The notes under the pieces are model-generated. The model worked only from the letters and a program-made list of their open reading frames with translations. It ran no database searches and was not told the DNA's origin. This document shows, one piece after another, positions 21,058 through 64,000 of a DNA stretch of 64,000 nt. The stretch lies in sequence record OZ196285.1; one strand, 5' to 3'. How positions within the stretch are numbered: position 1 is the stretch's first letter; every line of letters begins with the position of its first letter. The position numbers were made by a program, and so were the translations under genes.

Positions 21058-21469
21058 TACAACCCAACTCTTGTTTGAATAGTTTAGTAGCAAGACCACC
21101 ATTAATGACTTTGCCTGTTGCGTTGAGTGCTTCGATTAGACCACGCATACCGCTCATGTTATCAACACCAGAATCAGCGATATAATCAGTAACAAACGTT
21201 TTCATTTCAGCTTCTGGCATAACAACTGGTAGCAAGTCTTCAACGACTTTGATTTCAGTTTCAAGCTTAGTGATTTGATCAGCATCTTTGATGTAATCAA
21301 GCATACCGCGATTAGCTTCGACGATTGCAGTGATTGATTTGATACATGCCTTGTTGTCGTGATTTTGCTTGCGGTCGAGATCTGCGATTACAACAGACAG
21401 GACAGAAGACGCGATGTTGTCGCGTGCTTTACGTGCAGCCAAGTGAGCTGCTTTGATTTTAGTGATCAT
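21032..21469 (-). CDS. GatB/YqeY-like protein
   Basis: IKAAHLAARKARD...LETEIKVVEDLLP...MRGLIEAL pattern. Confidence 0.65.
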   Translation of the reverse strand: MITKIKAAHLAARKARDNIASSVLSVVIADLDRKQNHDNKACIKSITAIVEANRGMLDYIKDADQITKLETEIKVVEDLLPVVMPEAEMKTFVTDYIADSGVDNMSGMRGLIEALNATGKVINGGLATKLFKQELGCNGIRRYAQ

Positions 21470-21879
21470 ACTATTCCACTCTCAATTTTTCTATTATCAA
21501 TTACGTGTTTAATTGTGAAGCCCATTTGACTAACGCCTTTAAGAGCTTCTTCGATGAAAGACAAAACATCTTTCATGTGTTGAAACGTAGCAATCGCAAG
21601 TTGAAGTAATTCATCGCCTGCTAGAGCGTATTTCATTTCACTTTTCTCAACGATAAAGTCACAGACCTCATCATCGTGTTTGCCACTGTAAAACAGCCAA
21701 CGATCTTTACGACAGCGTTCCATTTTCAGTTCAGCTTTAAGTAACAGTTGTCGAGCATCAGCACGATAGCTAAGCCACTTCGAGTGAAGAACAGGAATGT
21801 TGATAGCCGCAAGTTCAATCGCAGTCGTATCGATCTTCACGTCTTCGTGATATTCAGATTTAAGTTGTTTAAGATTCAT
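21466..21879 (-). CDS. uvsY: Recombination mediator UvsY
   Basis: IPVLHSKWL, WLFYSGK, GFTIKHVIDNRK; synteny. Confidence 0.93.
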   Translation of the reverse strand: MNLKQLKSEYHEDVKIDTTAIELAAINIPVLHSKWLSYRADARQLLLKAELKMERCRKDRWLFYSGKHDDEVCDFIVEKSEMKYALAGDELLQLAIATFQHMKDVLSFIEEALKGVSQMGFTIKHVIDNRKIESGIV

Positions 21880-21899: not shown

Positions 21900-21928
21900 A
21901 TTATATATAAGCATCGGGTTTAGATCAA
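21900..21928 (-). promoter_or_regulatory. uvsY promoter
   Basis: TTGATC-17-TATAAT immediately downstream of the 9-nt repeat array. Confidence 0.7.
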
Positions 21929-21984
21929 CTAATATTTCTAACATTTCTAATATCACTAAGTATACTAATTCTACTAAGATGATG
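21929..21984 (-). repeat. Six TTAG direct repeats at an exact 9-nt period (copy A)
   Basis: CTAA on the + strand at 21929, 21938, 21947, 21956, 21965, 21974. Confidence 0.9.
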
Positions 21985-22010
21985 TGGAATTTTTCCGGTC
22001 CGCTAGAAAC

Positions 22011-22032
22011 AAAAAAAGCCCCGTAGGGCTTT
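22011..22032 (-). terminator. Intrinsic terminator after the tail fibre operon
   Basis: AAAGCCC-TACG-GGGC-T7 on the minus strand. Confidence 0.8.
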
Positions 22033-32215: not shown

Positions 32216-32952
32216 TTTTTAAAAATAATGTGGGATGGTACGCAGGCGCAGGTTCTGTTCGTCATGACTTTTACATCAACGGCCCTATCGAAGAGCCAAG
32301 TGATTATGACGAAATGTTGCAGATTTTAAATACTGCTTCAGAGACAGACGCGATCTACCTGCACATCAATACACCCGGTGGTAACTTCGCTGCGGCATGT
32401 CAAATCTGTGATGCAATTATGCAATCAAAAGCAGGTGCGATCATTGCGTGTGCAGAAGGGGAAGTATGCAGTGCGGGTACAATGATTTTCTTAGCTTGTA
32501 GTGGATGGCACGTAAGCCCGTTTGCTACATTCATGTTCCATACGTCAAGCGGCTATCACGGTGGTAAAATGCCGGATGGATTGAAACAAGCGAAAGCGCA
32601 CGAAGAGCACTTGAACCGCGTTGCGGGTCTGCTTTACACGCCTTTCTTTGATGACGACGAAGTTCATGACATCATCAACAACAACCAGGACGTTTGGCTA
32701 ACGCCTGAAGAAGTTACTGTTCGCTTACAAGCAATGGCAGAACGATTCGAGGCTGAGTTGAAAGAAGCTGAAGCAGCAATGCAAGCAGAAGCTCAGGCAG
32801 CACTTGACGAGCAGATTGCAGAGCGCGTAGCAGCCGGTGTTGAAGCAGCATTGGCGGCCCTTGAAGCTGACGACGATCTCGACGAGATTGAAGAAGTTGA
32901 AGAAGTTGAAGAAGTTGAAGAAGTTGAAGACGACAGCAACGACAAATCATAG
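32212..32952 (+). CDS. ClpP-like serine protease with an acidic C-terminal tail
   Basis: HINTPGG, CSAGTMIFLA, FMFH, DVWLTPEE; tail contains (GAAGAAGTT)x4 at 32890-32925. Confidence 0.85.
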   Translation: MIFKNNVGWYAGAGSVRHDFYINGPIEEPSDYDEMLQILNTASETDAIYLHINTPGGNFAAACQICDAIMQSKAGAIIACAEGEVCSAGTMIFLACSGWHVSPFATFMFHTSSGYHGGKMPDGLKQAKAHEEHLNRVAGLLYTPFFDDDEVHDIINNNQDVWLTPEEVTVRLQAMAERFEAELKEAEAAMQAEAQAALDEQIAERVAAGVEAALAALEADDDLDEIEEVEEVEEVEEVEDDSNDKS

Positions 32953-57485: not shown

Positions 57486-57660
57486 TCTCGGTGACGTGAC
57501 AATGCCAGCCTTATACATGAAAGAAGAACATGCCAATAAGGTGCTATACAAAAACGACTTGGATAAACAGTGCTACGTAGCACCTGTTAAGCCTGAAATT
57601 TACATAATGGGAAGTGAGAATGATTCTAACGATTCTAAATCAACTAGCAGCAACGACTAA
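57436..57660 (+). CDS. Hypothetical protein
   Basis: GAGGA RBS; overlaps both neighbours. Confidence 0.4.
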   Translation: MMFAILMKSNHEVAIIDLGDVTMPALYMKEEHANKVLYKNDLDKQCYVAPVKPEIYIMGSENDSNDSKSTSSND

Positions 57661-62383: not shown

Positions 62384-63190
62384 ATGACAATCACTAAACA
62401 AGAAATGACAGCAATCGCACTTGACCTTATGTCTGGTAACAACTTAATGCAACGTGACCTACTTGCTGAAGGTTGGGTATTTGGTTGGTCAACTCGCACT
62501 GCTGCACTAGGTGATTGTTCATACCGCGATAAAGAGATTCGTCTTTCTTCAAAGTTTCTGAATGCACGTACTAAAGAAGAGCAAATCAACACAATCACTC
62601 ACGAAATGGCTCACGCAATCGCATGGACTGATTTCAACGAACGTGGTCACGGTGCTATCTGGAAACGTGTTCATCGTCAACTTGGTGGTAATGCCGAGCG
62701 TTGTTCAACAGTTAGCAACCCTGAAGCAGTTGAAAGCAAATACACGGTGTTCTTCATCAACGCTAACGACGAAATCGAAGTGATTCAAACAACTGAGCGT
62801 ATGACTCGTAAGTTTCGCCCACAAAACATCAAAACACTATACTTGGGCCGCCGTAAAGCTGAAACTCAAGGTAAGATTCGCTGTGTAGCTACATCGACTT
62901 TCAAATCAATCAAAGCTGATCATGAAGCATCTAAAGCATCTAAAGCTGCTCCCGTTGCTGCACCTGCTCCTAAGAAAGTAGAAAAGAAAGCTGCACCTGC
63001 TAAGAAAACAACTGCACGTGGTGAAGCTGCACGACGCGAAATCGAAGCACATGTAACAGCAACAATGGGCTTCTCAAACGTATCATTCGAACAGCGTGGC
63101 AAGTACAAAGACTGGTACATCACTGCAACAGTAAACGGTAACATGTTTGAGCAACGTCTAGACGCATTCAAAAAGAAAAACGGTTTATAA
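62384..63190 (+). CDS. SprT-like zinc metalloprotease
   Basis: THEMAHA HExxH, HGAIWK; Ala/Lys/Pro-rich linker and small C-terminal domain. Confidence 0.85.
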   Translation: MTITKQEMTAIALDLMSGNNLMQRDLLAEGWVFGWSTRTAALGDCSYRDKEIRLSSKFLNARTKEEQINTITHEMAHAIAWTDFNERGHGAIWKRVHRQLGGNAERCSTVSNPEAVESKYTVFFINANDEIEVIQTTERMTRKFRPQNIKTLYLGRRKAETQGKIRCVATSTFKSIKADHEASKASKAAPVAAPAPKKVEKKAAPAKKTTARGEAARREIEAHVTATMGFSNVSFEQRGKYKDWYITATVNGNMFEQRLDAFKKKNGL

Positions 63191-63208: not shown

Positions 63209-63229
63209 AGCCCCGAAAGGGGCTTTTTT
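63209..63229 (+). terminator. Intrinsic terminator
   Basis: AGCCCC-GAAA-GGGGCT-T tract. Confidence 0.88.
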
Positions 63230-63252
63230 AGGTTTGAGGCTCGAAAATTGGG

Positions 63253-63308
63253 CATCATCTTAGTAGAATTAGTGCTCTTAGTGATATTAGAGTAATTAGG
63301 AGTATTAG
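63253..63308 (+). repeat. Six TTAG direct repeats at an exact 9-nt period (copy B)
   Basis: TTAG at 63260, 63269, 63278, 63287, 63296, 63305. Confidence 0.9.
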
Positions 63309-63337
63309 TTTAACGCACCCCGTATCTGTCATATAAT
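63309..63337 (+). promoter_or_regulatory. Promoter downstream of repeat array B
   Basis: TTTAAC-17-TATAAT. Confidence 0.65.
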
Positions 63338-63357
63338 AGATGTCGAGGTGATGAACA

Positions 63358-63597
63358 ATGATAACAATCTATACAATTCCTAACTGTGACGGCTGCCGTC
63401 ACGCCATTTCCCTCTGTAAGTTCAAGAAAATTCCATTCGAAGAAATCGTCATACAGTCTCAAGCTGACATCGACAAGCTTCATATTAAACTAGGTGGAGT
63501 GCGCAACGTTCGCGTACCATTAGCGATGCATGGCGACGTTTACATCGGGCATCTGCCAGAGCTTAAACGTTACGTTGATAGCAAGCTGTATAAATAA
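63358..63597 (+). CDS. Glutaredoxin (NrdH/NrdC-like)
   Basis: IYTIPNCDGC, VP, YIG. Confidence 0.85.
   Translation: MITIYTIPNCDGCRHAISLCKFKKIPFEEIVIQSQADIDKLHIKLGGVRNVRVPLAMHGDVYIGHLPELKRYVDSKLYK
63589..63596 (+). promoter_or_regulatory. Late promoter TATAAATA
   Basis: Exact consensus upstream of gene 24. Confidence 0.8.
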
Positions 63598-63654: not shown

Positions 63655-64000
63655 ATGACTGTATCTATCGGTAACGGTTTACCAGACATTGTGGCAGTTC
63701 AGAAAAAGCTTTATCCGTTGATTTTTACGGACATCGTTTCAGAACAACCAACAAAACAACCAATCGCAACTGCATATGGATTCAAAGCGTCTGAAGACAC
63801 TGACGATTCAAGTGATTGGAAAGCATTCAAGTTTACACTAGACCGCTGGGCAGCTAAAGTCGAATCGACAAAGCTAAAAACTGAAATTTCATTAGAAACT
63901 ATTCAAGACCTTGAAGCTCTTGGGTTGAGTGTCGACCTAATCACTGAGTCACTTGCTGATCAAGTCGCTGATGACATCAACACAACAATCGTAGAATCGT
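63655..64000 (+). CDS. 24: Capsid vertex protein, 5' part (runs off the window; absent from the ORF track)
   Basis: LIFTDIVSEQPTKQPIATAYGFK, KLKTEISLETIQDLEA, LADQVADDIN resemble T4 gp24. Confidence 0.85.
   Translation, partial: MTVSIGNGLPDIVAVQKKLYPLIFTDIVSEQPTKQPIATAYGFKASEDTDDSSDWKAFKFTLDRWAAKVESTKLKTEISLETIQDLEALGLSVDLITESLADQVADDINTTIVES

Follow-up and report, generated by a model that had tools for sequence, protein, structure and literature searches.

Vibriophages of the KVP40 group carry, at five or six evenly dispersed intergenic sites, copies of a ~100-bp element in which a hairpin precedes six TTAG cores repeated with a 9-nt period. We propose that the element works on separated strands, as a site of unwinding and assembly, and is most likely a candidate replication-origin module, a reading to which we assign a probability of about 0.35. 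The window analyzed here, bases 1-64000 of Vibrio phage F86 (OZ196285.1, 228,383 bp), contains two copies, A and B. This T4-like phage belongs to the KVP40 group and is closest to the D482/6E35.1a group (~80% identity), followed by the KVP40, VH7D, and ValKK3 groups (~75%). UvsY is 80-95% identical inside the KVP40 group and less than 40% identical outside it, which marks the group as isolated. We found no prior description of the element, which is of the repeat-plus-hairpin cis kind and of origin or operator type: it is not described in the paper on the PeSL cassettes of nt-1 and KVP40 (PMC4122927), the phi-pp2 genome paper, the reviews of T4 replication (PMC3016281) and T4 transcription (PMC2988021), or a five-genome comparison (PMC1524935), nor is it annotated at locus E in the RefSeq record of KVP40; the paper that first reported the KVP40 genome (PMC180978) may mention the repeat.

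How is the element built? At copy B, a SprT-like gene (62384-63190) ends in an intrinsic terminator (63209-63229, +; a stem at 63209-63224, then a T-run) that is unchanged in the orthologous copies of seven phages. Next come the leader hairpin, or palindrome (63236-63256, +; a 9-pair stem and an AAA loop), in a leader that ends in CATCATC; an ATC and six 9-nt units (63257-63308, +) with TTAG cores at 63260, 63269, 63278, 63287, 63296, and 63305, the 9-nt period spanning 63260-63308; and, abutting the array, a sigma-70-type promoter (63309-63337, +), in which TTTAAC (63309-63314) and TATAAT (63332-63337) are 17 nt apart and keep their positions in orthologs. The terminator, the cores, and TTTAAC-17-TATAAT all lie where the initial annotation had placed them. 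The downstream operon opens with an NrdH-like glutaredoxin gene (63358-63597, +), which encodes a 79-aa thioredoxin-fold protein whose KVP40 counterpart is annotated as NrdH glutaredoxin; the gp24 vertex protein starts at 63655, and gp55 and the replisome genes follow beyond the window. Across seven phages, the whole copy B intergenic region is 83% identical, exceeding its coding flanks. Copy A lies on the minus strand: an intrinsic terminator after the gp35-like tail-fibre gene (22005-22032, -), a leader hairpin weakened to four central and two terminal pairs (21981-22001, -), the ATC and six TTAG units (21929-21980, -; cores within 21929-21977), and an abutting sigma-70-type promoter (21900-21928, -; TTGATC-17-TATAAT), with uvsY (21466-21879) downstream.

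The two arrays differ at 9 of 49 positions, all of them in spacers, with the six cores identical (hypergeometric P ~0.001), just as had been noted from the pair. Three in-phase TTAG cores occur nine times in the 64-kb window, eight of these inside arrays A and B; shuffled sequences yield 0.29 ± 0.52 such triplets, and none of 100 shuffles reached nine. A one-mismatch, three-unit TTAG-like match in the DNA ligase gene (57626-57647, -), with neither leader nor further units, is considered a chance hit. A generic repeat detector also reports a near-perfect 9-nt tandem repeat, TTGAAGAAG x5, at 32888-32932 of the window; it probably encodes protein and has no connection with the TTAG element.

Although the initial annotation described a two-copy system, A and B belong to a larger family that extends throughout the genus, with five or six copies at matching sites in about 50 KVP40-like genomes. 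A scan for six in-phase TTAG cores finds five perfect arrays in F86, at 21977 (-) and 63260 (+) and, outside the window, at 106431 (+), 195994 (-), and 221954 (+) of OZ196285.1 (C, D, and E). KVP40 has six copies (35.9, 79.2, 129.7, 184.0, 210.0, and 238.3 kb), and the copies of the two phages occupy orthologous sites. A 111-nt copy E query returns five or six matches in each of ~50 KVP40-like records and no other match among 50,697 phage records. The arrays also stand alone within a genome: a detector blind to the motif (any 4-mer, period 6-13, at least five units) finds no phased arrays other than the six TTAG arrays in the whole of KVP40. In Aeromonas phage Aeh1, which has AsiA without MotA, no comparable array is present in 100 kb that include the uvsY and gene 24 regions. 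Leader or unit 1-2 patterns match KVP40, VH7D, and a few uncultured relatives only, and in metagenomes and IMG/VR the element is confined to KVP40-like contigs; a generic five-unit TTAG-N5 scan of IMG/VR gives, among the matches listed, unrelated perfect tandem repeats, mostly from coding or giant-virus sequence. Bacterial genomes contain only chance three-unit TTAG matches, and on that ground a host origin or host regulon is rejected. Copy number varies by lineage: F86 has no copy at locus F, where in KVP40 and VH7D a sixth copy (KVP40 129652-129733) fills an 80-nt gap between two early ORFs, and three uncultured relatives known from metagenomes carry an extra copy at another locus, x.

Could the arrays be coding sequence? 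Three small hypothetical CDSs span them: VPHF86_0317 (OZ196285.1 195891-196028, -), VPHF86_0343 (221851-222054, +), and VPHK566_0095 (K566 64513-64614). All three look spurious because the invariant bases would fall on wobble sites, a noncoding pattern, and a coding role for the array is rejected for the same reason. An 18-nt TTAG-containing repeat inside VPHF86_0173 (OZ196285.1 ~112369-112378, -) is, by contrast, coding (Lys/Pro/Ala-rich) and does not belong to the family.

Selection on the cores, first suggested by the A-B pair, is upheld by the relatives. Across 23 distinct instances, information content is 1.95 bits in the cores, 1.26 in the spacers, and 1.60 in the leader, so that the cores, far from varying as freely as the spacers among relatives, are much the more constrained. 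Their invariance between A and B is not absolute in the family: 133 of 138 cores read TTAG, and the remaining five deviate by one base each, unit 6 accounting for three and K566 copy B for two. The spacers are unit-specific (unit 1 is always TTAGTAG[A/T][A/T]), and unit conservation declines from 5' to 3'. Read along the strand of the flanking genes, the element reaches ~25-45 nt upstream of the first TTAG and consists of an optional GCGAAGC box, the hairpin, ATC, and six TTAG-N5 units, the array making up its 3' two-thirds. The oligonucleotide d(GCGAAGC) folds into a DNA mini-hairpin of exceptional stability that has been reported close to certain replication origins. The box lies ~12 nt upstream of the hairpin in many KVP40-type copies and is decayed or absent in those of F86. 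In KVP40 and VH7D copies it appears, at that same distance, as a conserved [A/G]GCGAAGCG box (e.g., L262 29640-29650).

The hairpin consensus, GAGGCGGAA-AAA-TTCCG[C/T][A/C]TC, folds into nine pairs around an AAA loop. Over an alignment of 22 instances, pairing holds in 84% of cells, as compared to 33-53% in slid registers; two pairs change from GG/CC to CC/GG in four sequences, and the covariation score was reached by none of 500 shuffles. Independent compensatory events are few because the copies convert one another. The stems of F86 copies A and D are weakened, and that of copy B is held only via G-T wobbles, so that it folds on the sense strand but not on its complement. The leader was never found without the array.

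Strand composition is equally asymmetric. The spacer bases comprise 240 A, 183 T, 136 G, and 16 C: C amounts to 2.8% of the spacers, as opposed to 20.8% of the genome (a 7.5-fold depletion), whereas G, at 23.7%, matches the genomic 22.7%, and the sense strand of the element is almost free of C. The low GC content of the array thus reflects loss of C from one strand, which leaves no intrastrand G-C pairs on either; with one strand nearly devoid of C and the other of G, neither can fold upon itself, and folding predictions show no structure in either one beyond the hairpin. The duplex is weak as well. By nearest-neighbour free energy, the five F86 arrays fall among the least stable 0.01-0.4% of 50-bp windows (copy A in the lowest 0.01% and copy B in the lowest 0.32% of F86 windows), 3-4 SD below the genome mean stability; the ~50-bp, A+T-rich, helically unstable unwinding element expected of an origin of the T4 oriF/oriG type is present in the arrays.

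What would such a site be for? Its polarity, the loss of C from one strand, a wobble-tolerant hairpin, meltability, phased cores, and even dispersal together argue for a site that functions either after opening or in transcribed form, and among roles of these two kinds a replication-origin module explains most of the features. We infer that the array, among the easiest places in the genome to melt, opens in vivo and acts after duplex opening, with help either from the early promoter that fires outward next to it or from transcripts passing through it. Once open, it would display six phased TTAG (or CTAA) motifs beside a hairpin, which together may form a loading platform for a phage-encoded oligomer; the elements would then be phage origins, with a logic analogous to that of T4 ori(uvsY) and ori(34).

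The T4 parallel is architectural only. T4 has about five dispersed origins, with most early synthesis starting in late-gene regions, and its minimal oriF and oriG are ~100 bp, a promoter plus an A+T-rich unwinding element or DUE (PMC3016281). The element described here likewise spans ~100 bp, joins a promoter to ~50 bp of easily unwound A+T-rich DNA, is co-oriented with genes, and recurs around the genome, with one copy at uvsY, where T4 annotation places oriF; early-type promoters adjoin copies A, D, and E, which are found in regions of late genes. The differences are as plain: T4 origins share no common motif, and their DUE, which has no sequence requirement, lies downstream of a MotA-dependent promoter, whereas here all copies share the hairpin and the TTAG cores, the array precedes the clear promoter, and MotA was not found. 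No TTAG array precedes T4 uvsY. By analogy with oriF and oriG, the order of array and sigma-70 promoter would count against an origin; by contrast with the T4 DUEs, which need no specific sequence, invariant TTAG would require an extra reader.

Regular direct repeats in or near an unwinding region, in strand-asymmetric AT-rich DNA, are familiar from other origins: the 12-nt iterons of T4 oriE, plasmid and lambda iterons, the 13-mers of the oriC DUE, and DnaA-trios. In such systems an initiator can read short repeats as single-stranded DNA, as DnaA does on the ssDUE or the trios. Classical iterons are 17-22 bp and helically phased, unlike the TTAG units, which have a 4-nt core and a 9-nt period (as compared to 12 or 17-22 bp) and form five or six dispersed copies instead of one. 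Iteron origins also adjoin an initiator gene; here none is found among the flanking genes, which differ at every locus. The cis-acting, origin-type function proposed in the initial annotation therefore keeps its appeal, in that it fits the even spacing, the duplex instability, the lack of internal G-C pairs, and the copy at the uvsY position of T4 oriF. The family, though, comprises five or six copies and not two, its anatomy is unlike that of T4 and iteron origins, and its role in replication is a proposal. The stronger proposition, that all origins of a T4-like phage share a sequence-specific module of hairpin and six TTAG cores read in single-stranded form by a phage oligomer, is tentative and somewhat doubtful.

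The gene context limits what else the element could be. Every copy is intergenic and has the orientation of both flanking genes: A lies between gp35 and uvsY; B between the SprT-like gene and nrdH-24-55-47-46-45-44-62-regA-43; C between an ORF and ORF-dam-rIIA-rIIB; D between gene 3 and gene 1-57A-57B; E between 12-2 and wac-13-14-15; and F (in KVP40 and VH7D, not in F86) between an ORF and a lipoprotein-like ORF. The downstream genes of A and B had been called unrelated, and this extends to the uvsY, nrdH-24-55-replisome, dam-rII, gene 1-57A, wac, and lipoprotein-like operons, making a gene-specific regulon unlikely. Downstream of copy C, VPHF86_0165 (L003 42662-43174) encodes a 170-aa protein with a sub-threshold match to the ArdA antirestriction family (E=0.05, 14.6 bits, cutoff 27); the homologous KVP40 slot (0136) has no CDS in RefSeq.

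An intrinsic terminator lies 10-60 nt upstream of the array at four of six loci (A, B, D, and E) and is absent at C, F, and x; a sigma-70-like promoter lies 0-27 bp downstream in five of seven locus types, abutting the array in A and B, and none is recognisable at F or the metagenomic x. From the last core to the -35 hexamer the distance is 0-2 nt in A, 0-1 nt in B, 10-13 nt in E, 16 nt in F86 C but 27 nt in its KVP40 and VH7D orthologs, and 27, 24, and 23 nt among D orthologs, steps that are not helical. This variable spacing, together with the promoterless loci F and x, argues against a role in promoter geometry: a fixed-geometry class I/II activator site is rejected, as is an UP element, which is further disfavoured by the lack of A-tracts. 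Since the leader is never present apart from the array, a general promoter class is rejected too. The element may itself contain a promoter, though this is weakly supported: the palindrome is centred at about -30 of the invariant TAG[A/T]AT in unit 1, where a middle-mode promoter of the oriF/oriG type would have its factor site; in copy B it scores 9/12 as a sigma-70 promoter, a weak consensus match, and its -35-like hexamer is not conserved.

If promoters so often follow the array, might a protein simply read it as duplex DNA? A phage regulator, either of the ribbon-helix-helix type or a missing MotA analogue working with AsiA, would bind the six 9-bp units and the palindrome cooperatively and, as a temporal class, turn the neighbouring early-type promoters on or off. 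The operators of omega (pSM19035), MetJ, and ParG offer a precedent: contiguous 7-8 bp repeats of sub-helical period, arranged in tandem upstream of promoters, on which the protein assembles cooperatively as a helix around DNA, one regulator controlling several dispersed promoters. The TTAG arrays resemble them in their contiguous short repeats, sub-helical period, and proximity to promoters, and the promoters at five of seven locus types and the palindrome near -30 speak for such an operator. So does the AsiA anomaly: KVP40 carries AsiA and no motA, noted as an open point (PMC2988021, PMC1524935), which leads one to expect a partner, and a class of sites, of another kind. Yet the period is 9 bp, the distance to -35 varies among loci and orthologs (16 vs 27; 27, 24, and 23), no promoter is recognisable at F or x, the operon behind copy E is a late one, the confinement of the leader to arrays precludes a general promoter class, and neither the one-strand depletion of C nor wobble-only pairing is expected of a duplex reader; no cognate regulator was identified among the handful of neighbouring proteins scanned. 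We regard a duplex operator as less likely than an origin, though a serious rival to it. At copy E, the late gene wac has its own TATAAATA promoter, and the early-type promoter sits just upstream of it. The ~70 nt upstream of wac, comprising the TATAAATA late promoter and the 5' leader, are almost identical in F86 (within OZ196285.1 222005-222130) and KVP40 (within 210080-210204), while the coding flanks are 75-80% identical.

A site that is read single-stranded could also be read as RNA. Here the hairpin and six UUAG repeats would act in polycistronic or terminator read-through transcripts, as a processing site or as a site that an oligomeric RNA-binding protein wraps in the manner of TRAP or HutP on NAG repeats, to control translation, stability, or termination at operon junctions. 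TRAP and HutP sites comprise 6-11 U/G-AG triplets, regularly spaced in unstructured RNA of ~50-55 nt that wraps on a ring oligomer, and the ~54 nt of the array come near the length of TRAP-wrapped RNA. Every copy is in the sense orientation, the sense strand is almost C-free and unstructured, copy B pairs by wobbles on that strand only, and conservation declines from 5' to 3', as it would if binding nucleated at the hairpin and then spread cooperatively. With no terminator ahead of them, the arrays of loci C, F, and x must be transcribed, and they form part of a leader that precedes the RBS at F and probably at C and x; in KVP40 locus F, unit 5 doubles as the Shine-Dalgarno sequence and unit 6 abuts the start codon. 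An array that runs into an RBS counts against an origin and suits an RNA role equally well. On the other side, the arrays of A, B, D, and E are flanked by a terminator upstream and a promoter downstream, so that at these four of the six loci the majority of downstream-gene transcripts would lack the element; the spacers are 5 nt, as opposed to 2-4 in TRAP/HutP sites; copy B matches none of the Rfam covariance models and copy A matches at chance level (E=0.42); and even spacing and extreme duplex instability would go unexplained. We know of no TRAP- or HutP-like gene in KVP40-like phages and found no candidate protein; one annotated "RNA-binding protein" has the domains DUF2828/DUF7788. An RNA element is, on balance, less likely than an origin and ranks level with the duplex operator as a serious rival to it.

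The polarity and composition also invite a reading from the opposite strand, whose transcript would be C-rich, G-free, and unstructured. The element could then be a polar barrier, either a Rho-loading site for antisense RNA or a roadblock to forks or transcription, that protects the upstream operon. Strand composition, strict polarity, and the position at operon boundaries would all agree, but Rho does not require an invariant CUAA, promoters for antisense transcription are not evident, and the idea is purely inferential; we consider it very improbable.

The replication-origin reading draws further weight from the way the copies are placed. In KVP40, the gaps between copies are 43, 50, 54, 26, 28, and 42 kb, and the copies are over-dispersed on the circular map (minimum gap 26 kb; P=0.006 for six random points); the five-copy spacing in F86 gives P=0.035, a test that is not independent of the first. 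Even spacing could also reflect the boundaries of gene modules, which would weaken the case for origins. Copy order and orientation on the circular maps are identical in F86 and KVP40. The suggestion that the inverted copies A and B might recombine is therefore half right: the segment between them is not inverted, since order and orientation match in the two phages, and an A-B inversion is rejected, but the copies do exchange sequence by gene conversion. Paralogous copies within a genome are 81-86% identical, while F86 copies are 76-80% identical to their KVP40 and VH7D orthologs and 78-79% to non-orthologs; in VH7D, copy C is 99% identical to copy D of the same phage and 90% identical to copy C of KVP40, which indicates gene conversion.

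Do the copies persist merely because they recombine? In T4-like phages, PeSL promoter-terminator cassettes combine a stem-loop, an AT-rich stretch, a sigma-70 early promoter, and a Shine-Dalgarno sequence, are repeated genome-wide, and recombine with one another (Arbiol 2010; Comeau 2014, PMC4122927). If the element were a module of this type (terminator, AT-rich stretch, early promoter), its repeats would be maintained mainly by recombination and shuffling, with no trans-acting reader. Copies A, B, D, and E do share the layout described for nt-1 and KVP40 (PMC4122927), a stem-loop followed by a sigma-70 early promoter and a Shine-Dalgarno sequence; within-genome paralogs are as alike as orthologs, with gene conversion indicated, and copy number differs among lineages (F86 has no locus F, metagenome relatives have x). 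The layout does not hold for C, which has no terminator, or for F and x, two locus types that lack both terminator and promoter. PeSLs are numerous and lie in hyperplastic regions, with no phased TTAG or leader hairpin described (PMC4122927), whereas here five or six copies sit mostly at conserved core-gene junctions, and KVP40 has no phased arrays besides them. Near-invariant cores, fixed phase, five or six units, and core-genome sites kept over ~25% divergence of the flanks imply sequence-specific selection. We consider a PeSL-type cassette quite improbable.

If the element is a replication-origin module, where might its reader be encoded? F86 has an AsiA homologue (Pfam E=1e-34), and with AsiA present and MotA missing, the element is also a candidate site for the partner of AsiA. 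Pfam finds no MotA domain in the protein next to asiA. At the AsiA locus (OZ196285.1 166309-166940), asiA is followed by a gene for a Tad2-like Thoeris anti-defence domain protein (PF11195, E=6e-24); directly upstream, with overlapping stop and start codons, lies a gene for a 243-aa protein with no Pfam or PDB match, which is one place to look for a MotA analogue.

The element also shows concerted evolution cleanly, among cis elements scattered through the genome of a lytic phage. The KVP40-like phages serve widely as models for vibriophages and are candidates for biocontrol; in them the element presents a small, defined, mutable target (~100 bp, six copies) for finding either the origins or the missing regulator. 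Should all origins of these phages indeed share this one module, read in single-stranded form by a phage oligomer, that would define a new type of origin and initiator for T4-like phages without MotA and provide the first handle on how their replication starts.
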